A DNA stretch of 64,000 bases from Piromyces finnis finn (GCA_002104945.1 MCFH01000062.1:62001-126000), one strand, 5' to 3'; counted from the stretch's first letter, positions 12,977 to 29,206 are shown. Notes: generated by a model not told the origin, from the sequence alone. Numbers and translations: made by a program.

Positions 12977-13954
12977 ATTGCTAAAAATAAATTACTTATA
13001 AAGGAAAGGGAAAAAAAAACATTTAATTACAGGATGTGAAAAAGTATAAATAATCGTAGTAAGATTGAGGGTTATAAATTAATATAGAAGTAACTATTTC
13101 AATAGCTGTTAATTAAATGCTAAAAAAAATTAATATAATTTTTAATTGATTTTATGGTTACCATAAAACCTACTAAAATCAAAATTAAGAAATATATATT
13201 TATTTTTTTTAAAAATGTTTATAATAATAGTACTATTAAAATTTATAAATATTTAATACAAATAATTAAAAATGGTTCAGTTCACTATAACATTAATACT
13301 TTTTCTTTGATCGTTTCTTCATTTAAGATCTTGACCTGAAAAGGAGACAATCCAAAATTTGATATAGTAGTCTTCATCATTCATACAAAGATAACAAATA
13401 CTTTATAGATATTCTCTTTCAATTTATTCATCAGATATTTTGTAATTGTGTAGTCATTTTACACATTATCAAATTTTTAGATTTTTTATTCTTGTTACTT
13501 GTTATTACTTGAGATAGAAGTAAGCTTTGTTCTTCTTTGTTCTTGAAATTATAATAATGACACAATATTGGTATTTAAAGTCACAGGATGTAAATTAGTA
13601 AAATGGCCTCAAAACACCCGTTATAATATTTTGTATTAGAAGTAACTAATTCTGCAGCTGTTAATTTTAAATCTAAATGGTCATGCTAATTTCTTTTATT
13701 TTTCTTTCTATGAAGGTATGGAGGTGTTGATGAAGTGTTTTTTCTTTATTTGATATCATTTTTACTATTATAATATCAAATATTTAATAAATAAAAACAA
13801 TACTATTATATATTATTTTAGAAACCTTTTTTAATCAATCTTAATACGCTCGATACTTTTTTCTTTTCATTTTTGAGACCGCTGAAGTTTTAAAAAATTT
13901 GAAAAATCCTTTTCCTTTTATACTTTTTTTTTTTCTAAAATTCAAAGTTATTTA

Positions 13955-13985
<31 letters not shown>

Positions 13986-14575
13986 AATAATAAATAATAA
14001 ATAATAAATAATAAATAATAAATAATAATAAATAATAAATAATAAATAATAAATAATAAATAATAAATAATATTATCATTTTATTCAAATTTAACATTTA
14101 AGAATTAATAAATTACTTGACACTTTTTATTTAATTTTCTAGTAATGTATTTTCTATTTTTTTGATTCTTTTTTATAAATTAAAAACTTTATATTTTCTA
14201 TATAAATTAAACTACTATTTTTGATAAATAATTAATAATTATTACTATGCTTTTTTATTTTATTGTTATATTATTTTAATATTTTAATATTCTTTCAATA
14301 TTATTATTTATTTTGTTTTAATTAAAAATTATTTTTTTATTTTTAGTTTTTATCTTTACCACACAAAAAATTTTCTTTACCACATAAAAAATTTTTTAGT
14401 GGTTAATTAAAATAAAATAATAAAAATTAATAAAAGTATTATAAAATAAAGGATAAAAAAATAAAAATAATCAAAGTGGTAAATTTAAAAAATAAAATGT
14501 CAAATAATTTATTAATTCTTAAGACTTGAAGTAGAATAATAAAGTAATAAAATAAATTTTTATTATTATATAACA

Positions 14576-14623
<48 letters not shown>

Positions 14624-15601
14624 TAAATAACTTTGAATTTTAGAAAAAAAAAAAGTATAAAAGGAAAAGGATTTTTCAAATTTTTTAAAACTTCAGCGGT
14701 CTCAAAAATGAAAAGAAAAAAGTATCGAGCGTATTAAGATTGATTAAAAAAGGTTTCTAAAATAATATATAATAGTATTGTTTTTATTTATTAAATATTT
14801 GATATTATAATAGTAAAAATGATATCAAATAAAGAAAAAACACTTCATCAACACCTCCATACCTTCATAGAAAGAAAAATAAAAGAAATTAGCATGACCA
14901 TTTAGATTTAAAATTAACAGCTGCAGAATTAGTTACTTCTAATACAAAATATTATAACGGGTGTTTTGAGGCCATTTTACTAATTTACATCCTGTGACTT
15001 TAAATACCAATATTGTGTCATTATTATAATTTCAAGAACAAAGAAGAACAAAGCTTACTTCTATCTCAAGTAATAACAAGTAACAAGAATAAAAAATCTA
15101 AAAATTTGATAATGTGTAAAATGACTACACAATTACAAAATATCTGATGAATAAATTGAAAGAGAATATCTATAAAGTATTTGTTATCTTTGTATGAATG
15201 ATGAAGACTACTATATCAAATTTTGGATTGTCTCCTTTTCAGGTCAAGATCTTAAATGAAGAAACGATCAAAGAAAAAGTATTAATGTTATAGTGAACTG
15301 AACCATTTTTAATTATTTGTATTAAATATTTATAAATTTTAATAGTACTATTATTATAAACATTTTTAAAAAAAATAAATATATATTTCTTAATTTTGAT
15401 TTTAGTAGGTTTTATGGTAACCATAAAATCAATTAAAAATTATATTAATTTTTTTTAGCATTTAATTAACAGCTATTGAAATAGTTACTTCTATATTAAT
15501 TTATAACCCTCAATCTTACTACGATTATTTATACTTTTTCACATCCTGTAATTAAATGTTTTTTTTTCCCTTTCCTTTATAAGTAATTTATTTTTAGCAA
15601 T
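12977..15601. repeat. Long inverted repeat: 994-bp arms (12977-13970 / 14608-15601), 637-bp spacer
   Basis: Identical 61-aa ORFs on opposite strands. Paired coordinates at both arm ends and both ORF ends sum to 28578, so there is no net indel. Confidence 0.93.
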
Positions 15602-16194
15602 TTAAATGATGTTGAAAAATTATTTATATCCTATTATTACAATAAAAAAATATTAAAATATTAAAATATTAAAATATAATAAATAGTAATGTAATTTAAA
15701 CAATAAAAATATATAAAAGTTAAATAAAATAAAATTTTAAATAGTTATAATAATAAATATATGTGAAATAAATGTTTCTTATTTATAAATAAATTTATTT
15801 CATTTTCAATTGTTGTATTTTTATTTGGTTATTGTTTGTCTTTCTAAATTAATAATATAATACTAGTTAAAAGATACTTTTGCTTTTAGAGATATTTAAT
15901 TTATAATGTATTCGGTATTTCATAAGAATATATTTGAAACATATAATTAACATTAAAATTATTGATATTTTTATAAATATCCTTATTATATTTATAATAT
16001 ACTATTAACTTTTCTTACTAATTTATTATAATATATCACCACAAAATAAGTTTATTTTTTATATTTTATAATAAACGACTGAATTTTCTTCTTTATTATT
16101 TTTTATATTCAGTTATTCAACTTTAATAAATTAATATAATTTTTGTGTATATTCATATATTAATAAGTGTATATGTACAAATTAAAAGTATAAT

Positions 16195-17075
16195 TTATAG
16201 AACCACTGCTTTTAAGATTTATTATTAGTTTTAACATTTCTACTTGAAAACTAATACCTGTGGAACCAAGATCATTATTATTAATAATTGCAGGATTATT
16301 TTGAACAATATCACCGGCAATAGCACTATTATCATTATTATTAATTGGAGGTGATCCACCACTAAGAATAGATAAGACATTACCATTAATAGTAATCCAC
16401 CAGTTGGATCACCAAGACATTCAGCAATAGTAACAAAATTATATTAATTGAATATACCATTATTAATAATGAATAACACAATATCTTTAACAGTGTGTGG
16501 CTTAACATCATGCATTAAAACTAGATATCTTTCTTTCTTTTTATTATATTCATTGATTAGAAAGTCTTTAACTGTTTTAAATCTAGCATTAAATTTTTTG
16601 TATTGAACTCCATTGACTACTTTATTCCAATCATTAGTGTCAGTATCCCATTGAATAACTTTGTAATTAAATTCTTCAAATAACATTACATTAATCTCAC
16701 CCCTTGGAGCGCAAAAATAAGTTGGATATTTACCAGCGGTGTTTTCGTAAATTAGGTTTTCAATTAAAGACAATGATTCAAGCATACTTTGTTTATCAAT
16801 AGTTCCATTATTCTTTGGAATTTCATGTTTCTAAGTATGAGAAGCAACCTGTTGACCTTCAGTAGCTGCTTTCTTTAAGATGGATTGTTTTTCCTCATCA
16901 GCGGATAATTTCGGCCAATAATTATTACCATTAATAAAAAAAGTGTCATGAATACCTGCTTCTTTTAAATAATCAAGTAATTCAATAGTGTATTGGAATG
17001 AGCCATCATCAAATGTAAGAGCAACTGTATTTGGTTCAGTACGAGAACGAATAAGTGCAGCATTTATACAAATAA
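16195..17075 (-). pseudogene. CE4 polysaccharide/chitin deacetylase (NodB domain) pseudogene
   Basis: Motifs ALTFDDG, TFFING, ASHT*KH (TAG at 16833-16831 where Trp is expected), F(C)APRG, WD.DT.DW, LVLMHD, FVTIAECLGD. Second stop at 16446-16444 and a frameshift before a Ser/Asn tail. Confidence 0.85.
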
Positions 17076-17754
17076 CTAATTATACTATATTTTACATTTA
17101 TTTAATTATTAATTAATATAATTTAATACTAATTAATATTTGTAATGTTTTATTATTTTTATAAAAGTTAAATTATTGTAATTTAATATATTTGAATAAA
17201 AATACAATTTTATTTTTAATATTGTATACAATATTAAGTTTATATCTAATTTCGACTTATATTAAATATCCATAATTAAATAAAAGTTTAAAAAAAAATA
17301 CCCAAATAAAATCCTAATGTAGCAAGTTTTATATATTTCATTTTTTTATTTATATTTTATTAAAATTATCCTAGTTCTAATAATAATAATAATGATAATA
17401 ATAATATTTATATTTTATTTTAAAAATTTTTATATATATCATTTTTTTGCTAGTCATTTTTATTTTTATATATTTCTTATATAAATAATATCAACTATTC
17501 ATTTCTTCAGATATACTATAATAAAAATATATTTTAATAAAGTATATATATATATTCATGGTAATTAACATTGTTCTTTAATTAAAAAACCCTATAAACT
17601 AAATAATATATCAATTAATAAATAATATATATATTAATAATTTTCCTTTTTTTTTTTCTTTAAATTAGATTTTTTTGTTTTTTTATATATTTTTTAAATA
17701 AAAGTGTTAATGTATATTTTTAATTGTTATAATCAATTTTTTTTAACAATTATT

Positions 17755-19101
17755 ATCTACATTTTCAAATTAATATTTTATAAAAAAGTAAAAATTAAAA
17801 AGAATTATTAAAATAAAATATATATAATTTTTTTATTTTAACGTAAATGACTAAGGTATCTTGCTCTTTTTTTTTTTTTTATAAACATATATTTAATCCA
17901 ATGAAAATAATAAAATAAGATAAAATAGAAAAAGAATGATAGAATATTCTTTTTTTAAAAAATTTATTTTATATCTAGAAAAAAAAAATTAATTTTTTCC
18001 CCTAATATTTTACCAGTTTTATTATTATCTCACTTATATAGAATATTATAATATTTATATATTTTTAAATAAATATTCTTTGTTATATATATTTAAATAT
18101 ATATAATTGAGTTAAAAAAAGTAATTATTATTATTATTATTATTCTAATTATTATTTTCTTTAATAAAATTTGATTACTAAATATAATTTATATTTTAAA
18201 AATTTCTTTTTTTTTTTTTAAAAAAAATAAATGCCGTTAAAAATATTTTTAAAACACAAATTAATTTATTTTTCTAAAAATGGATACAAAAAAATTTATC
18301 AAAAATGAATATTCCATAATTTTATTTTTTTTTAAGGATAAAATTAAAAAAAAAAAAAAAGATTGGAATTGAAATCAAAATAATTAGAATTTTAATAATA
18401 ATAATTAAAATGATAATAATTGTTATTACTTTGTTTTATTTTAATTATATAACTAAGAAAAGTAATAGTTATTATTATTATTTCAATTCCAATCTTTTTT
18501 TTTTTTTAATTTTATCCTTAAAAAAAAATAAAATTATGGAATATTCATTTTTGATAAATTTTTTTGTATCCATTTTTAGAAAAATAAATTAATTTGTGTT
18601 TTAAAAATATTTTTAACGGCATTTATTTTTTTTTAAAAAAAAAAAGAAATTTTTAAAATATAAATTATATTTAGTAATCAAATTTTATTAAAGAAAATAA
18701 TAATTAGAATAATAATAATAATAATAATTACTTTTTTTAACTCAATTATATATATTTAAATATATATAACAAAGAATATTTATTTAAAAATATATAAATA
18801 TTATAATATTCTATATAAGTGAGATAATAATAAAACTGGTAAAATATTAGGGGAAAAAATTAATTTTTTTTTTCTAGATATAAAATAAATTTTTTAAAAA
18901 AAGAATATTCTATCATTCTTTTTCTATTTTATCTTATTTTATTATTTTCATTGGATTAAATATATGTTTATAAAAAAAAAAAAAAAAAAGAGCAAGATAC
19001 CTTAGTCATTTACGTTAAAATAAAAAAATTATATATATTTTATTTTAATAATTCTTTTTAATTTTTACTTTTTTATAAAAGATTAATTTGAAAATGTAGA
19101 T
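17755..19101. repeat. Long inverted repeat: ~621-bp arms (17755-18375 / 18480-19101), 104-bp spacer
   Basis: For example ttaacgtaaatgactaaggtatcttgctc versus gagcaagataccttagtcatttacgttaa, and gattggaattgaaat versus atttcaattccaatc. Differences seen only in homopolymer lengths and at the outer end. Confidence 0.92.
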
Positions 19102-19617
19102 TAAAATATTTAATTATATATAAAAAAAATAAAAGTAGTTTTAGTGCTTTAGTATAAACATTTTTTAACAAGAATAAAAATTGCTTTTTTTTTTAAAAAA
19201 AATGAACAATACTAAAAATATATATAGCATTTATAACATGTACATTTATTGATTATAATTATATGTATTTAACTTAAAAAAGTCCTTAAAAGAAGTACAA
19301 AATATATGAAAATTTTTTTATCCATAAAAGTTAAAAAAAAAATGAATTAGGGAACACAAGAGAGTAATTAAAAAATTTTATATAATTAAATAGAAAAACT
19401 TTATTTTTTATGATTATTTATTAAAGAATTTATATAATTACTGTACTCAAATCAATATATTTAATAATTGATTTTAATTCAATTGATATCAAAGCATACT
19501 AACATACTACTAATACTACTATTTAAAAAAAAAATTATAAATAGTCAAAATTTTTTTTTTAAAATTTTAAAAAATTAAAAAAAATAAAAATAAAAATAAA
19601 AATAAAATATAAAATAA

Positions 19618-20718
19618 ATGAAATACCTTAATTTAATTTTGACTTTTCTTCTTTTATTTTCATCAATTATTGCTGCTCCTACTAATGGAATAGCAAAAAG
19701 ATGTGGTAAAAATCATGGTAAATGTGATGAAGGTTATTGCTGTAGTGAATATGGATGGTGCGGTGAATCTGATGATCATTGTGGTATTGGGTGTCAATCC
19801 GAATTTGGTGAGTGTGAAATAACAACTACTAGTACTCCTTCTCCAATACCAACTACTAGTACACCTCCTCCTACACCAACATCACCAAAGAAGGAATGTG
19901 GTAAAGACCATGGTAGCTGTGATAAAGGTTATTGTTGTAGTAAATACGGATGGTGCGGAAAAGAAGAAACTCATTGTGGTACAGGATGTCAATCTGAATT
20001 TGGGGAATGTTATAATCAATCACCAACATCACCAAAGAAGGAATGTGGTAAAGACCATGGTAGCTGTGATGAAGGTTATTGTTGTAGTAAATACGGATGA
20101 TGCGGAAAAGAAGAAACTCATTGTGGTACAGGATGTCAATCTGAATTTGGCAAATGTGAAATTAAACAATGTAAAACTGAAAATAAATATGGAAAAATTG
20201 AAAAAGAAGCTCAAACGAATGCACTTTACATTTGGAACTTCCTTGTTGAAAAAATAGGAAATGTGTATGGTGCAGCTGGTATGATTGGAAATATGTATGC
20301 TGAATCTCGTTTAAATTCAATGAATCTTGAAAAAGTCTATGAAGATAAATTAAAAATGACTGACGAACAATATACAAAAGCAGTTGATAGTGGAAAATAT
20401 CGTAACTTTACAACTGATTCAGCTGGTTATGGTTTAGTACAATGGACTTCAAAAAAGCGTAAGGAAGGTCTTCTTGATTACGCTATAAAGCAAAAAAAGA
20501 GTATTGGTGATCTTCAAATGCAACTTGACTACTTCTGAATAGAACTTACTAATAATTATAATGATATTTATAAAGTTTTAAAAAAGGCTAAATCAGTTAA
20601 AGAAGCTTCTAATAAAGTCGTCTTAGAGTATGAAATCCCTAGAGACCGAAGTGAGAGTGTATTAGAGAAGAGAGCCGATTTTGGAGAAATGTTAAAATTA
20701 GCTTGTGGTTCTAATTAA
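19618..20718 (+). pseudogene. Secreted 3x CBM18 (hevein-like chitin-binding) + phage-tail-type lysozyme domain (PF18013-like); two in-frame TGA
   Basis: One continuous frame of 366 codons + TAA. Signal peptide, three CG...C..GYCCS.YGWCG....HCG.GCQSEFG.C repeats and a Thr/Pro linker. C-terminal IWNFL..KIGNVYGAAGMIGNMYAES...GYGLVQWT..RK..L..YA......I.DL..QL.YF. TGA at 20098-20100 and 20536-20538. Confidence 0.82.
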
Positions 20719-20968
20719 ATCGATTATATATATTTAAAAAATATATATACATAAATTAAAAATTATATAAATACAAAACAAATACAAATAAAGTCGTCTT
20801 AGAGTATGAAATCCCTAGAGACCGAAGTGAGAGTGTATTAGAGAAGAGAGCCGATTTTGGAGAAATGTTAAAATTAGCTTGTGGTTCTAATTAAATCGAT
20901 TATATATATTTAAAAAATATATATACATAAATTAAAAATTATATAAATACAAAACAAATACAAATAAA
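20611..20968 (+). repeat. 176-bp tandem duplication of the lysozyme gene 3' end and 3' flank
   Basis: gtcgtcttagagtatgaaatccc... begins at 20617 and at 20793. The junction shares AATAAA. Confidence 0.93.
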
Positions 20969-21078
20969 AATAATATTAATAATTTAAGTAAATAATTATA
21001 GATAATAATATAAAATTATTATTTTTATATTAATAATAATAATTAGTAAATTTAATCAAATAATTTCAAAAAGTAATA

Positions 21079-21121
<43 letters not shown>

Positions 21122-21262
21122 ATATATAAATAAAATATAAATATATATATAAATAAATAATTAAATAAATAAATAAATATATAAATATTTAAATATATAA
21201 ATATATAAATAAATATAATAAAATATAAGATATTAAGAAATAAATTGTATTGAAATATTGAA

Positions 21263-21772
21263 TTTTTTTTTTTTTTTTTTTTTTTAACTTCCGAGTGCAT
21301 TTCTCCCATCGATCAGAGTTAGCTCCAATGGTGGTTCTTAGAGAAACGTTGGCTCATTCCTATTGCTAGGTGGTTGTGACCCTCCTGGTCTGTCATACTG
21401 TTTCTTCAGCTTCGACGCTCACTTAATCCATGTACATTAGATGCATGTCGTTGTACGATATTTCACAACTACAATGCTAAGCCTCTTATAGTCAATTTGA
21501 TCACGTGTCAACCGCCCTAATGTTTACACTTAAATTGATTAAGGAATATTATGTGTTTTTGGCATAGCCTAAGTCACCACTTATTAAGTTCTAATTTGGA
21601 ATGTACCATGTACACTAGACCCTCTCAGGCCGGCTAGACGAGTGTTATTATCATAGTAGTAAATTAGAAAGTTCATTTATACTTACCTGAATATCATAAC
21701 CCAACCCATGGCAAACCCAGTGGGAAAATCCACAGGCACTGACATCTGCGGGGTCGAACCAGTTGAAATATT
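21263..21772 (-). mobile_element. Poly(A)-tailed non-LTR retroposon (SINE or truncated LINE 3' end) with 13-bp TSD
   Basis: GC-richer island beginning with poly(T) on +. TTGAAATATTGAA flanks both sides (21250-21262, 21773-21785). A second copy lies at 34394-34680. Confidence 0.82.
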
Positions 21773-22488
21773 GAAATAGTAGAATTAACTCATAAATTAT
21801 ACATTTATAATAAATTAATCTATATAAATATTGTTTAATAATATTTTAAAATATGTATGTAATAAAATAAACCATATAAAAAATTAAAAATAAAAATTCA
21901 TATTATAATTTTATCATTTAAAAATTATTAATATTTTATTACTGTTTAAATATGGTTTTTATAACAAACTTTTATTCTTTAATAAAATAATATATTAAAA
22001 TTAATATTCATTATTTTTAAATTAAATCTATTATACAAAATAAGGTATAATTTTCGTTAATTCTCTGTAACATTTTTTTATTTACAGTTATTTTAAACAA
22101 AAATTGGATAAATCAGATAATTAAATAGAAGTATTTAAAGCAATAAATAAGAACAATAACTCTATAAAATAAAATATAAAAATAATTCTATTTAAACTTT
22201 TTATTAATTTTATTATATTATATTTACTTTTTTTAAATTTATATAAAAAAGTTCATTTATTTACTTTTTTCATATAATTATTATTAATTATTATTATTAA
22301 TTATATGAAAATAATATTTCTTTGATAATAACAATAAAAAAAGAAATTATATATATCTATTTATATAATTAATTTATATTATTTTTATATATTTATTTCT
22401 TTTATATATTATCATGTCTATATTTCTATTATTTCAATATTATATTTTTAATATTGTATATAAAATGTAATATTATTAAAAATTAAAA

Positions 22489-24242
22489 TTAATTGTGGAG
22501 TTTAACACGACATTTACGAATGGTCTTCTTTGGTTTCTTAGTAGCTGGCTTTTTGGTTACTGGAATGGTTTGTCTCATCACAGTAATAGTTTTAGTAATA
22601 TGTCTAATGGTAGTTGAATTGATTTCTTCCTTAATTTCATCGTTTTCATCTAATACGGTGGATTTTTCATCTTCAATAATATCTTCATTAACATTTTCAT
22701 CAGCTGAGTCAATTTCTTCAACTTCTTCAACTGATGTTATTTCTTCTGCTTCTTCTTCATCTGAACTTAATGAAGGTTCTTCTTTTGTAATTTCTTCGTC
22801 TTTAACTTCAGTTACTTCTTCTTCAATAATAGTAGTTGGTTCAATAATAGTAGTAGTAGTAGCTATTGGTTCAATAACACAAACACCTTCTTCATTAGAA
22901 ATGAATCCTTTACTACAAACACATTTACCATTAATTAATGTACTTCCTTCTTTACATTTAGTACAAGTATTACCATCAATACAACTAGCACAGTTTACTG
23001 GACATGCTGAACATCTGCATTTATCACCAATAAATGTTCCTTCACCACAACTCATGTTAACTGTGAAACGAGCAATACCACTGGATTCAGCTGCTTTGAA
23101 TTCCTTATATGAAACTGATTCAGTTTCGCATTTTGGTAAGCTACCACGATTGTAATTTTCAATGTTGATAGAATATTGACTGAACTTAGCAGTAATATTA
23201 TTAGCATTTACACTCCATTCTGCCTTTTCTTTTTTATCAACAATAACATCTAAACAGTTATTGACAAATTCTTTTTGGAATTCTTCGTAACTCAACTTTT
23301 TGTTAGAAGAAATAGTACAGATGACTTGATCTTTGTTTTGTTCACTGCAACCATCTTGATAAATTTCAATTAAATACTTTTGGTTAACAAGAATACCATC
23401 CATATGTCCATTTTCGGATCCTTCTCTTTTGATAACATATCCCTCATAATATTCACCAAAGAGTTCATCCATTTGTTCATAGAAATTTAGGAACTCTTAG
23501 CAGCTTTGTAGAAGGCTGTGTTATCACATTTTTCACCATTAATATTGTCGGTAGAAAGATACCAGATCCAATGGTTACCACCAGTTTGTTCTCTACGATT
23601 ATAATCAATGTAGATACGACATTGTTCTCTGACACGATCTAAACCAGTATTCATATCCCAATGGATTATATCGTATGGAACATTGTTGGAAGAAGGTCCG
23701 AATTCTGCAATATCGAATGCATGATTGATGTCGAGTGGAGAAACATTAGAATAGTACAAGTAGGTAGCCATGAGAGCTTCTGTTTTGTAGGCTTGTTTAA
23801 TAGAAAGTCCATCACAAGATTTTAAATTCTTGATAAGTAATGAGAATTTTCCATCAACGACAGAAGCAATGGAAAAATCATTGATTTCAACATTATTTTG
23901 TTTAATTTTAACATAATCTTTGATTTCATCATCTGTAAAACGATAGCCAGTTTTGTAATTGTTGAGACCTTCATTACCATTCTTTAATTCACCGATTCTT
24001 AAATTGAAAGAACCATCATTGTTATTTTCTTTTTTTACAGAGATGTTAATGATATCATTTTTAATACCGAAATTGGCAAAATTTATAAAACATTGATCTT
24101 CTTTTCTTAAAACACCATCTTTAGTGTATTCAAGAGAGACATTTTTAGCTGCCTTTTCGTTGATTAATGGTGAATCAGCATTTACAAAACAAACACTGGA
24201 TACAGAAAGTAAAGCGAAAAATTTTAAAATATTCTTGAACAT
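22489..24242 (-). pseudogene. Secreted protein with furin-like/EGF Cys-rich repeats and a Thr/Glu-rich tail, split by a 1-nt frameshift near 23495
   Basis: Adding one base at gctaag(g)agttc fuses the 251-aa and 327-aa ORFs (...FYKAAK-EFLNFYEQMDELF...). Signal peptide; CSACPVNCASC..CTKC..G...C.C repeats. Confidence 0.72.
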
Positions 24243-25231
24243 TTTGATATTTATATTATTTCTTTTAAGAATTTTAAAAAAAAGTTTTTAAAATTTAGTT
24301 TATATACAAATATAAAAGGTACTTGGATTTTGATTAAAAGTTATTATATATTACAATTTGACTTTTAAAGTCAATAACATCTAAAAATTGTTTTATAAAT
24401 TTTTATAAATAATTAGTTAAATTATTATTTAATAAAAATAATTAATATTTTAAATCGTTTATTCTTACCTAAATATAGATGAAATATTAAGTAATTAATT
24501 AATAAAAATATTAATTATAATAATATTTTTAAAAAAGATTAGAATATTTAAATATTATAATGTTTGAAATTAATGATTATTAAAATAATTTTTCTTGAAA
24601 GAAAAATCGAGTTCCTTTTATATTTCAAATTAAATAACTTTAAAATATGAATTTTTATTTCATCTTTAATCAAACCTTTAATAAATGTGATATTAAACCA
24701 ATATTAGATATAATGAAATTGAAACATAAAACTATTTAATAGTAATAATATATAACACTGTTTAATAATTTTCTTTTTATTTTAAAAATTAAAAAATAAA
24801 TTTCTTTACTATTATTATTTATTACTTAATAAAGACTTTTTAATAATTAATAATTATTAGATATTAAATTAAATGTGGGAAATTTCCTTTTTAATAATTT
24901 ATTTCAATTTTTTTTTCATTTTCATAAATTAAATTATTAATATTTAATTAATTTTTATAATGTAAACTTCTTTAAAAACTTTATATACTATTAAAAAGTA
25001 AATAAAAATTATTATTTTATATTAAATATTTATTTCATATTTATTCAAGGAAAATTATTTAAATTAAAATTAATAAAAAAATAATCTTTTAATATGAAAT
25101 TTAATTTAAAATTTATTTTATTTTATATTAAAAATTAATTTTTAATTCTACTTTTAATAAAGTTTTTAGTTTAATACTTTTGATCAATTAAATTAAAATA
25201 TACCAGATATTATTGTAGTAGAAGAGTTCAT

Positions 25232-25342
25232 CATTTAAATATATATTTTTAATAAAACTTTACTTTTTCATTTAAATATATATTTTTAATAAAACTTTAC
25301 TTTTTCATTTAAATATATATTTTTAATAAAACTTTACTTTTG
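25232..25342. repeat. 37-bp tandem repeat x3
   Basis: catttaaatatatatttttaataaaactttacttttt at 25232, 25269 and 25306 (third copy slightly short). Confidence 0.9.
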
Positions 25343-25649
25343 TAACTTTTTTTTAAAAGAACCAAATCAATTAATAATTAATAGAAAATTTCAATAAAAA
25401 TTTATATTTTTTATTATTGAAATTAATTTTATTCGCACCTTTTTCAATAAAATATTTAACTTTATTCACAATTCTTATTTTGAATATTTTTAATCTTTGC
25501 CATCAATTAAATATATAACCATGTTTTTATTTTCATACCTATTATTAAATGGATAAATAATTGTTATAATTTTGTATTGGTAATTATTTTATTTCACATT
25601 ATTTTTCTTGAAAGCTTTACATAAATCATAATTTAAATAAAATTTATTA

Positions 25650-26625
25650 AGCAGAAACTGATATTTAGATGGATTGAAGAATAATTAATTATGATGTTTT
25701 AGAATTAATTATAAAAAGTGTATAAAATTAGAAAGTTATGGAAAGACAAAGTAATGGTGAAATAAGAAAAGAATTATTAATAGAAGATTATATTAAAAAA
25801 TTTATTAAGCTTACTCTATGGTAATATAATTTTATTGTATTCTGGATATTTAACATTATCAGATGAGAAAGAATATGAATAAAATATAAATAATATGGAT
25901 GATTAAATGACAAATCTGTTATTAGATAAAGTTGAAGCGAATAATTTATCATTAGATGAACCATAATCAACTGAAAAAGATGAAGGTTCAAATCAAATAG
26001 AAAAATATAAACGTAAAATATTAAATAATATTAAAGAAGGTAATAAGAAATATGTTAAAATTCCAAATGGTGAAGTTTTAGATAGTTTTGTTATTTTGCT
26101 AAGCCCTATTATAGATAATAAATTAGAAATCGCACAAGATAAAATAATTATGATAAGGAAGTAAAAGAAAATATTTTAATTGAAATTAAAGCTTTTAAGA
26201 AAAATACAAAACCCAATAAAAGAAAAAATAATGAAAAAAATGAAAACGAAGAGGAAAGTAGTATCAAAGACTAAAGGAATGTGAAGATGCTATAAATCAA
26301 ATTGAAAAAAAAGAATATGAAAAAAAATATAGTGCTAAAGGCTATAGTAGTTTCATAAAATATGGTATTGCCTTTTATAAAAAAAACTTGTGAAATCAAA
26401 ATGAAAATAAATAATGGAAAAATACAAAGTTCATTAAAATCTAATAATGATGATAAAAACAATAACAGAAAAAGAAGAAAAAGAGCAATAACAACAACAA
26501 GAACAACAGGAACCAAAAGAGGCACAACAAGAACAAAAAAAGGAAATAAAAGGAACAAAAACAACAAAAGGCACAACAAGAAGTACCAAAACAGGATATG
26601 GAAAAATGTAAAGAATAAGAATTAA
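25650..26625 (+). pseudogene. Decayed AAA-ATPase/PD-(D/E)XK nuclease gene, C-terminal part (copy 1)
   Basis: YVKIPNGEVL, ILIEIK and CEDAINQIEKKEY...FIKYGIAFYKKTCEIKM, followed by a Lys/Gln/Glu-rich tail. Paralogous to 28222-29206. Confidence 0.72.
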
Positions 26626-27239
26626 ATGATAAAATAAAAATAGTATTATTATTTGATTTATAAATGTAACCTTTTTTATAGACCTTTATTAATAATGATA
26701 TTATTATTAAAAAAAATTAAATATTATTTAAAAACTTATTTTAAAAATATAAATAATGTAATTTTTCGTTAATTAAAGAAATCTAAGTTTTAATAATATT
26801 TAGTAATATTTAGTTAATATCCTACTAAAAGTGAATCTATTATGGAAATAATTGACAAAAACAACACAATCTAAAATATATTAATATTAAAATCCCATAC
26901 TACCTATCTTTTTTTATTTAATAAAAATTTCTATTTTTAAAATAAAAGAAAAAGTATTATTTTAAGAGAATTAAATAAAACAAAACTTTTTATCCATTAA
27001 AAATATATAATTATCAAAAAATATTAGTAGACAGTCAATGTAGTAGCATTATTATATTAATTTTTTATTAAAAGCTGATTTTCTAAAGATTAGATAAATG
27101 CAGAAATTGAACTTTATATTATTATAATTATAATATATAATGTAAAGTCATTTTGTATGTAACATATTAACAAGTGTAATTAGAACAATAATTAAAAATG
27201 AAAAAAGCAATATTCGTGAATTATTATTTGTTAATAAGA

Positions 27240-27530
27240 AATATCAAATAATACTAATAAAAAGGAGGATAAAGAATATGATAAAGATGAAGAAGCTTAT
27301 TATGAAAATGATGATGATAAAACTTTACCAAAAATTATTTATTTTATAATGAAAGAAAAAGGAATAAATACTAGTTTTAAAAAAGTTGTTATAAAGTATT
27401 GGATTATAATGAAGAATTGATATTTAATGGTAAATATTTAAATAAAAGGAATGAAAAAATTATTAAATATGGAATAGCTATATGTGAAAAAAAATGTGAT
27501 GTAATTTATGAAATAAATTATGGTAAGAAA
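27240..27530 (+). pseudogene. PD-(D/E)XK nuclease C-terminal fragment (copy 2)
   Basis: KIIKYGIAICEKKCDVIYEIN matches the family's terminal KYGIA motif. Confidence 0.55.
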
Positions 27531-27559
27531 TTCAAAAAAAAAAAAAAAAAAAGAAATGC

Positions 27560-29206
27560 CAAAAGAAATATATCTGATGAAAAATGTAATTTAAATCATT
27601 TTTATTTTGTTGATAAAACTAGAATGATATCGAATTTTATTGGCAAAGATAGAAATGTGTATTTGATATTACGACCAAGACAATTTGGAAAAAGCTTTAA
27701 TTTAAAAATGATTCAAGAAATTTTTTGAAAAACCTGTTAATAGAAAGGATCTAAGAAATGATTTATTTGATGGTTTAGAAGTTTCCAAAAATAGAAAATA
27801 TATGAGAGATTCTCACAAAAATCCTGTTCTTTATTTAAATTTTAAAGATGAAGAATCTAAAGATTATAAATCCGCTATTAAATATCTTTAAAATAAAATA
27901 TTTAATTTATTTAAATATCAAAGAGGAAAAATTGATTTTAAAAAATTAAATATTTAATAAAAAAGAAAATTTAGAATATAAAAATAGCTGGTGCAAAAAT
28001 GGAAATGAAAATATTATAAAAAAACTTATTGAAGATAATGAATTTTCATTTTTAAAAGATTTTCTAAGCTTATTCTATGGTAATATAGTCGTTATAAATG
28101 TAGCTAGAAGACTTATTTTAAAAAGTGAATATTATGAAAGTGAAATATGGTTATTTTTATTGTATTATGGATATTTAATATTCTCAGATAAGGAAGAATA
28201 TGAGAAAAAAATATAAATAATATGGATGATCAAATAACAAAATTATTATTATATAATGGTGAAGCAAATAAACTATTATTAGATAAATCCAAATCAACTG
28301 AAAAAGATGAAAATTTAAATCAAATTAAAAAATATAAATTATATCGATACGTTGGTAATAATATAAAATATGTTAAAATTCCGAATGGTAAAATTTTAGA
28401 AAATCTTATTTCTTTATTAAAAACTATTATAAAAGATAAATTAGAAATAGTAAATGATAAAATAATAGATAATTTTATTAACGGCCTTTTTGAAAAAGAT
28501 GTTAAAAAAGCTTATAAAAATTTAAATGAATATTTATCAAAATTAAGTGCATATCACTTGAATCCCAACATATATGATGAATTCAAAATGTATGGAAATG
28601 TTTATTAAGTGCTATTAATGCAAATATTTTTGTTTTTAAAAATTAAGAGTTTAATCCCAGAAGAAGATAGTGGATATGGTAGGTATAATTTTGGATTTTT
28701 TATTAAAGATTATTTTAATAATAAAGAAAAAGAATATATTTTAATTGAAGTTAAGATTTTTAAAAAAAATGCAGAATTCCATGAAGAAATAAATTATGAA
28801 GAGGAAGAAAAAGAAGATCATGATTATATCAATAGCTGTCTTTTAAAGAAATGTGAAGATGCAATAAACCAAATTGAAAATAAAAATTATGAAGAAAAAT
28901 ATAGAACTAACGGCTATAATAGTTTCATTAAATATGGTATTGCCTTATATAAAAGAACGTGTGAAGCTAAAATGAAAATAAATAATGGAGAAATACAATA
29001 CACGTCAGAAACTAGTAATTATAGTGATAATAAAAAAGGAAGAAAAAGAGCTACAACAACAATGCACGTCAGAAACTAGTAATTATAGTGATAATAAAAA
29101 AGGAAGAAAAAGAGCTACAACAACAAAAGCAGGAACAAGAAAAGAAGCAAGAAAAAGAACAAGAAAAAGAGCAAAAAACGAGAATAACAAAATATACAGT
29201 AAGTAA
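27560..29206 (+). pseudogene. AAA-ATPase-like (PF09820-type) + PD-(D/E)XK (PF08011-type) gene, fragmented (copy 3)
   Basis: YFVDKTRMI...LILRPRQFGKSFNLKMIQEIF (Walker A of this family), YVKIPNG, EEDSGYGRY, ILIEVK, AINQIENKNY, KYGIALY. Multiple stops and frameshifts. Confidence 0.82.
29001..29126 (+). repeat. 64-bp tandem duplication frameshifting the tail of the AAA/nuclease gene
   Basis: cacgtcagaaactagtaattatagtgat... at 29001 and 29065. Confidence 0.9.

Follow-up and report, generated by a model that had tools for sequence, protein, structure and literature searches.

How does a fungal genome come to hold a bacteriophage-type lysozyme joined to chitin-binding modules, what would such a protein do, and can the copy at hand still make it? 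These questions are raised by an open reading frame (ORF) at positions 19618-20718 of a 64,000-nucleotide stretch of the anaerobic gut fungus Piromyces finnis (GCA_002104945.1, MCFH01000062.1:62001-126000), the whole of which is referred to below as the window. An earlier note on this DNA had proposed a secreted fusion of three hevein-type (CBM18) modules to a phage-tail-type lysozyme of horizontal origin. Our reading, to which we give a probability of roughly three in four, is that the window locus is a recently dead paralogue of a secreted hevein-lysozyme family that descends from gut Clostridia or their phages, and that the intact copies of this family cut peptidoglycan.

Translated in a single frame on the plus strand, which also carries all features of the ORF described below, 19618-20718 is free of introns, as the earlier note had stated, and reads as a leader, a first hevein module and a linker, then a pair of hevein modules and a C-terminal PF18013 lysozyme domain. 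From the sequence, the leader (19618..19674) is a predicted signal peptide of ~19-20 hydrophobic residues with the same MKYLNL start as in the paralogues. Chitin_bind_1 (PF00187, Pfam) is matched three times within the ORF (E 8e-21, 74.4 bits against a cut-off of 27.8). Each module has eight Cys and a CCSxYGWCG motif supplying the Ser/aromatic/aromatic sugar-binding residues, and phmmer against PDB structures pairs the modules with pokeweed lectin, wheat germ agglutinin and hevein (E 2e-23 to 6e-4). In module 1 (19699..19815; best PF00187 stretch at residues 28-65, E 2e-23 against the PDB lectins) the Ser-Tyr-Trp sugar-stacking motif is intact. It is followed by a Thr/Pro/Ser-rich linker (19816..19893), recognized from its sequence and a 27-nt repeat, and then by module 2 (19894..20010) and module 3 (20041..20157), which are the units of a 147-nt tandem duplication and are 95-97% identical. 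By these matches the array is of the CBM18/PF00187 type, with predicted binding to chitin or N-acetylglucosamine (GlcNAc).

The lysozyme domain occupies 20188..20715 and measures ~176 aa, longer than the ~150 aa first estimated. Phage_lysozyme2 (PF18013) matches the middle piece of the ORF with E 2e-18 (67.2 bits against a gathering cut-off of 28.2) and the last piece with E 0.004 (17.8 bits), at colinear profile positions 2-81 and 85-132, respectively. The PHROG 20388 profile, "endolysin", matches the same two C-terminal pieces (E 2e-35 and 3e-10), and the motifs GNMYAES, GYGLVQWT and QLDYF are all found in the domain. The ORF region is 34% GC in a window of ~17% GC. Taken with the hydrophobic leader, the three PF00187 matches and the PF18013 match bear out the secreted fusion at this position.

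The frame is interrupted twice, and its PF00187 match in module 3 is accordingly split over the first and second pieces. The first TGA (20098-20100) takes the place of the stacking Trp in the GWCG motif of hevein module 3, for which modules 1 and 2 and every paralogue have TGG; in the lysozyme domain, the second (20536-20538) stands where a Trp codon would complete DYFWIEL. All relatives have Trp (TGG) at both positions and the paralogue frames are uninterrupted. The remaining four Trp codons of the window ORF are TGG, and its terminal stop is TAA. The public runs that contain the stretch amount to a single DNA run, probably from the assembled strain. Stop 2 is spanned there by a 124-nt read contig (20508-20631) at a depth of 164 and with zero differences from the window, while a shared read contig upstream of it has three-fold depth (468) and terminates exactly at the variable base, which fits a sequence held in common with the paralogues up to the G/A difference. 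Stop 1 is spanned by a 130-nt read contig whose sole difference from the window is at 20071. Over the first 130 nt of module 3, modules 2 and 3 differ at two bases only, one of which is the TGG>TGA change. Because read-derived contigs at single-copy depth (~160-210) carry both TGAs, assembly error was rejected as the source of the stops: the window locus is a pseudogene and cannot encode the fusion as written. At most, it could yield a secreted fragment of 160 residues that comprises two and a half hevein modules but lacks the enzyme. A genome-wide reading of TGA as Trp was likewise rejected as far as tested, given the TGG at the other Trp codons and tubulin matches in the P. finnis genome that show no run of in-frame TGA; the internal stops in those matches are mostly TAA (taken as introns, uninspected). 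A separate observation concerns position 20071, where the assembly reads G but the only read contig covering it reads A; with A, hevein module 3 would have Lys instead of Glu and would equal module 2. This mismatch is either an assembly error or a variant within the 147-nt repeat.

The same genome also has intact copies. When the assembly that contains the window (56.46 Mb, 232 contigs) was searched in six frames, three further loci came up that are stop-free and have Trp at both stop positions, bringing the total to four. The earlier note had asked for such uninterrupted paralogues, and their presence makes superfluous the repair of Trp codons that it had thought necessary for a functional test. 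One (L004, contig C188) codes for a protein of 459 aa that has four hevein modules, the second (L003, contig C199; L003:373-2115) for one of 580 aa with six, and the third (L002, contig C146) is an intact six-hevein copy of 580-645 aa. L002 (G000:C146:29182-32619) equals L003 (G000:C199:182586-186023), bar a few bases, over the aligned lysozyme domain and ~390 nt of 3' flank, indicating either a very recent segmental duplication or one region assembled twice. The paralogue lysozyme domains are 72-76% identical to that of the window copy, and PF18013 scores of intact paralogues are 95.1 and 90.6 bits. Compared with the six-module L003, the window copy has the same leader and the same C-terminal end, but its three hevein modules are of one type whereas those of L003 form alternating pairs, and only the window copy has the two stops, the internal 147-nt duplication and a 176-nt duplication at its 3' end.

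Public annotation covers these genes in part. The NCBI models for L002 and L003 (ORX42226.1 and ORX49573.1) are labeled "partial" and comprise 176 aa of the enzyme domain only. Upstream in the same open frame, a signal peptide and six CBM18 modules stand unannotated in both. Beyond P. finnis, Piromyces sp. E2 has two hevein-bearing models (270 and 327 aa) that NCBI names "CBM18 protein"; a third model, partial and 153 aa long, is called "hypothetical protein". Six further members lie on metagenome contigs and consist of a leader, zero or one hevein module and the enzyme domain; their flanks are 7-33% GC, all at or below 20% but for one flank of 15 nt, as is typical of gut fungi. The fungal relatives all start with a similar hydrophobic leader, whereas the bacterial and phage relatives start directly at the enzyme domain. 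Hevein module counts of 0, 1, 2, 3, 4 and 6 occur across the family, which turns over by module duplication, 3' tandem duplication and nonsense mutation in a birth-and-death manner.

The fold was predicted for the intact paralogue domain L003:1573-2112 and not for the broken window copy. The AlphaFold model has a predicted local distance difference test score (pLDDT) of 96.4 and a predicted template modeling score (pTM) of 0.91. The top three Foldseek matches are to the N-terminal domain of phi29 gp13 (3csr, 3csq; probability 1.0, template modeling score (TM) 0.60-0.67), and these are the only significant neighbors in the PDB. The GH184 structure 8b2e (E 1.0, TM 0.47-0.57) and lambda lysozyme match weakly, and chitinases of families GH19 and GH23 fall below significance (E 1.5-4, TM 0.36-0.45). 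The paralogue domain is thus modeled as a lysozyme-like fold of gp13 type, and does not group with the GH19 or GH23 chitinases, a grouping that the earlier note had named as refuting its proposal. Membership of GH184, GH19 or GH23 was rejected, as the structural echoes are non-significant and there is no Pfam match to those families. Phage phi29 gp13 (tail "morphogenesis protein 1"; PDB 3csr/3csq/3ct5) belongs to the same Pfam family and has the same fold and an aligned Glu45 (profile E 8e-6). However, gp13 is only ~23% identical to the fungal domain and belongs to the tail tip of the virion, with an M23 endopeptidase as its fusion partner, and the fungal domain has a middle section ~22 residues longer and Glu in place of Gln54.

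The Glu of GN(L/M)YAES aligns to gp13 Glu45 in both sequence and profile alignments, and its codon lies at 20302..20304 of the window (alignment to 3csr). This residue, already singled out as putatively catalytic by the earlier note, is invariant across 313 rows (13 fungal and 300 bacterial or phage). In gp13, Glu45 is taken as catalytic, and its equivalent in GH184 has been confirmed by mutation (PMC10394673). Conservation extends beyond it: of 49 columns with at least 95% conservation among the bacteria, the fungi keep 40. Three changes that are fixed or nearly fixed in the fungi are rare among the 300 bacterial and phage rows, namely Gly/Ala47 to Arg, beside the Glu-Ser, Gln54 to Glu, and Ala90 to Val, within GYGLxQWT; the corresponding codons in the window alignment are 20308-20310, 20329-20331 and 20437-20439. 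Glu occupies the Gln54 position in 12 of the 13 fungal rows, including the window copy (20329..20331), whereas the bacterial relatives have 95% Gln and 5% Glu. Gln54 of gp13 has been proposed to stabilize the substrate, and GH184 enzymes have Asp there (PMC10394673). The fungal Glu is therefore a variant and not necessarily a loss.

Where did the domain come from? The best non-fungal relatives are 50-61% identical and are overwhelmingly Clostridia (Lachnospiraceae, Oscillospiraceae and others) from rumen, caecum and faeces. In Butyrivibrio sp. INlla14, a rumen isolate, the domain is part of a 447-aa endolysin encoded directly after a holin-like gene, and holin-adjacent endolysins with the domain at their N terminus occur in Faecalibacterium phage FP_Lagaffe, Acutalibacter phage Fontainebleau and Dulem virus 37. 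Bacterial architectures add Amidase_2, CHAP, LysM, SH3_3, PG_binding_1 or SLH to the PF18013 domain, and a 2026 preprint lists Phage_lysozyme2 among the enzymatic domains of gut-phage endolysins. Over ~155 residues, the catalytic domains of the endolysins of FP_Lagaffe (AUV56383.1) and Fontainebleau (WAK78968.1) are 50-56% identical to that of the window family, with which they share the motifs, the Glu45 equivalent and PHROG 20388. They differ in having no signal peptide, an adjacent holin, and Amidase_2 and bacterial wall-binding modules after the domain; in the fungal proteins the domain is preceded by a signal peptide and hevein modules, and a second enzyme is absent. The description of a phage-type lysozyme therefore stands, but not its assignment to the phage tail, the nearest relatives being holin-adjacent endolysins of Clostridia phages and prophages.

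Clostridia-type endolysin domains were also seen at seven loci in genome bins labeled as Gram-negative taxa: L010, L011 and L066 (Succinivibrionaceae metagenome-assembled genome (MAG)), L043 (Alistipes MAG), L040 and L068 (Thermoguttaceae MAGs) and L080 (Tannerella MAG). Some of the seven are identical to copies in Clostridia bins, and they look like mis-binned phage contigs or phages shared across bins.

A tree of 96 domains (13 fungal, 80 bacterial and 3 phage; IQ-TREE, LG+C20+F+G4) places the 13 fungal rows in a single clade (ultrafast bootstrap 100, Shimodaira-Hasegawa-like approximate likelihood ratio test (SH-aLRT) 99; the values are rough, as the bootstrap had not settled when the search ended). 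Within it, the four P. finnis copies form a sub-clade (100/90) in which the window copy is sister to the three intact ones. Coding GC is 34%, with flanks of 12-19%, whereas the bacterial genes are 43-57% GC. The window gene sits in fungal DNA at single-copy read depth and is fused to a eukaryotic leader and fungal modules. No homologues in other eukaryotes appear among the top matches listed, although no exhaustive search was made. This pattern fits one old horizontal transfer from gut Clostridia or their phages, followed by diversification within the fungi, and upholds the bacterial or phage origin that had been proposed. Phage endolysins of the holin-dependent kind are cytoplasmic proteins that have no secretion signal and are encoded next to a holin in a lysis cassette; the fungal members, all with an N-terminal hydrophobic leader, fall outside this class. 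The fungal protein descends from endolysins but would act from outside.

Our reading of the family is as follows. It encodes putatively secreted proteins built from a signal peptide, hevein/CBM18 modules numbering from zero to six, a Ser/Thr-rich linker and, at the C terminus, the gp13-type domain. The enzyme domain probably entered the fungi once, from gut Clostridia or their prophages, whose holin-dependent endolysins use it as their glycan-cutting module. On the fungal side, the amidase module and the modules that bind the bacterial wall have been lost, and a eukaryotic secretion signal, hevein modules and fungal base composition have been gained. Released extracellularly, the intact proteins would cut the peptidoglycan glycan strands of neighboring, mainly Gram-positive bacteria, with the Glu45 equivalent as catalytic acid, while the hevein array would hold the enzyme on a GlcNAc polymer, be it the bacterial wall or the fungus's own chitin. 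Anchoring of the array on the fungus's own chitin wall, as suggested in the earlier note, is possible, but hevein modules also attach to GlcNAc in peptidoglycan. In the position taken by hevein in the fungal proteins, the bacterial relatives have modules that bind peptidoglycan, and we therefore lean slightly toward targeting of peptidoglycan GlcNAc rather than of the fungal wall. A eukaryotic parallel is amphioxus BbtPGRP3, in which, as in the fungal family, a hevein-type module precedes a peptidoglycan-degrading domain; this N-terminal module raised amidase activity on Lys-type peptidoglycan five-fold (PMC4610682). BbtPGRP3 differs in being an amidase (PGRP) and not a glycosidase, in having a single hevein module, and in being an animal immune protein.

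The alternative that best survives comparison with these data, though we consider it unlikely, is that the family acts on chitin, the domain having been re-used in a chitinase-like manner for remodeling of the fungus's own wall during growth or zoospore release, with CBM18 serving as it does on fungal chitinases. CBM18 is a chitin-binding module, GlcNAc oligomers are bound in gp13 crystals (PDB titles, PMC10394673), and the three fungal-fixed changes beside the catalytic Glu and in GYGLxQWT, along with the weak structural echoes of GH19 and GH23 chitinases, could be read in the same way. However, those chitinase matches are non-significant (E above 1), Glu54 is also found in ~5% of the bacterial relatives, most of the strongly conserved bacterial columns are retained, and the domain is 50-61% identical to endolysins that act on peptidoglycan, all of which argues against chitin as the substrate.

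A second alternative concerns the state of the window copy. Changes polarized with three fungal outgroups number 8 synonymous and 20 non-synonymous on the window branch, and 4 and 14 on the branch of the intact copies, and the pairwise ratio of non-synonymous to synonymous rates (dN/dS) is ~0.45. Neither the polarized changes nor dN/dS reveals long-term relaxed constraint on the window branch, although power is low. As there is no sign of long decay, the window copy looks recently inactivated, with the same proviso on power. The 176-nt duplication, a perfect tandem repeat of 2.0 copies at 20611..20962 that takes in the last 108 nt of the ORF and 68 nt of 3' flank (repeat search and read contig), must be very young given its 100% identity. 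It is absent from all three paralogues, and its junction is crossed by a read contig (20612-20816) at a depth of 282, about twice the ~158 of the flanks. Could the locus, then, be trimmed but alive, kept for a secreted product of 160 residues that would use its two complete hevein modules as a small chitin-binding lectin or to shield the wall? Fungi are known to have small secreted proteins of hevein or LysM type, and the first stop leaves the start codon, the signal peptide and modules 1-2 untouched. Nevertheless, the lysozyme part downstream shows no extra decay, so that the stop is young rather than long selected, no expression evidence is on record, and the second stop, independent of the first, points to drift together with the two recent duplications; we regard a living, trimmed locus as improbable.

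That the gene is effectively full length, its UGA codons being read through or decoded as Trp or the stops being errors or strain polymorphisms, has least in its favor and is very improbable: both TGAs fall exactly at conserved Trp positions, an improbable outcome of uniform mutation, and among the stop codons it is UGA that tRNA-Trp misreads most frequently, yet the four other Trp codons of the ORF and all those of the paralogues' aligned domains are TGG, the tubulin matches are without a run of in-frame TGA, the read contigs carry both stops, and two read-throughs in one mRNA would leave very little product.

Several points nevertheless weigh against a recently dead member of a peptidoglycan-cutting family. 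With regard to the stops, the chance of both being TGG>TGA changes comes to 0.0007 when mutation is uniform and to 0.06 when GC>AT transitions alone are counted, the latter being the relevant figure because the genome is 17% GC. The stops could be strain-specific, the sole read set probably coming from the assembled strain; the contig over stop 1 differs from the assembly at 20071 and sits in the 147-nt repeat; and no RNA run is on record for the window locus. With regard to the enzyme, peptidoglycan hydrolysis by the fungal members is a prediction, and the fungal-specific changes near the catalytic Glu could mean an altered substrate. The gp13 family itself is without a CAZy number because functional data on it are lacking (PMC10394673). 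Finally, because the tree is unrooted and its bacterial backbone lacks resolution, the donor cannot be named below the level of Clostridia or their phages.

A more specific version of events goes further than the recently dead paralogue and is offered tentatively. In this version, gut fungi would have turned an endolysin of phages into a secreted enzyme that attacks bacteria from outside. Arrays of one to six hevein modules, taking the place of its bacterial wall-binding modules, would hold it on Gram-positive peptidoglycan by way of GlcNAc, to which wheat germ agglutinin also binds there. The Gln54 to Glu change would provide a second carboxylate beside the catalytic Glu. The family would evolve by rapid gain of copies, multiplication of modules and loss of copies, of which the window locus would be a fresh casualty, in keeping with an antibacterial weapon in a rumen arms race. 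If this is true, the family would offer a first functional handle on the gp13 glycosidases.

In fungi more broadly, the closest parallel is with the muramidases of Dikarya in which a cell-wall-binding domain (CWBD) is joined to GH24 or GH184 (PMC10394673). These share with the present family a leader, an N-terminal binding module, a flexible linker and a C-terminal lysozyme fold of bacterial or phage type, and GH184, the structural neighbor of gp13, has its catalytic Glu in the corresponding position and an acidic residue where gp13 has Gln54 (PMC10394673). They differ in catalytic family and in having an SH3-like binding module, and activity has been shown for GH184, whereas the present proteins are from Neocallimastigomycota and known from sequence. 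What is new compared with the Dikarya muramidases is the gp13-type catalytic family, the hevein binding module and the Neocallimastigomycota hosts. The architecture had been put forward as uncharacterized, which holds for its biochemistry; the transfer, however, is already in a preprint, where PF18013 of P. finnis figures among transferred genes and its function is called unclear, and the homologues in Piromyces sp. E2 were already named "CBM18 protein". The main text of the preprint by Murphy et al. on horizontal transfer in gut fungi contains no mention of lysozyme, phage or hevein.

Anaerobic gut fungi live packed among bacteria, and a phage-derived wall-cutting enzyme carrying fungal binding modules is a plausible antibacterial tool in such a setting. 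The family is also a tractable route to the biochemistry of gp13-type lysozymes, which are unclassified in CAZy (PMC10394673). It is the intact sister copies, and not the window copy, that are worth testing; the window locus is by itself an ordinary pseudogene, and adds only to the evolutionary side by documenting family turnover and the incompleteness of the public P. finnis gene models.

Some minor observations concern the 3' end of the gene and its surroundings. Over the last ~120 nt of the ORF, the window copy (20580-20715) has 90-95% DNA identity to L003:1990-2112 and L004:1990-2112, compared with ~72-78% to the paralogues in mid-domain, and identity falls to background just past the stop; the high 3'-end identity may reflect gene conversion or unusually strong constraint. 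Carriage of the window gene as cargo of a long terminal repeat (LTR) retroelement was rejected, since the gene is without flanking LTRs: no LTR-type direct repeats were found within window positions 13000-28000, which hold low-complexity repeats and the two internal duplications only. Three neighboring ORFs (16444-16785, 22489-23472 and 23487-24242) were scanned against Pfam and gave no matches to phage families. Two of these lie adjacent on the minus strand at 22489-24242. One encodes 251 aa with an N-terminal hydrophobic leader and has no Pfam match; the other encodes a Cys-rich 327-aa product with an acidic tail, whose only match is a weak one to a furin-like repeat (E 0.001). The two may be exons of one secreted-protein gene.

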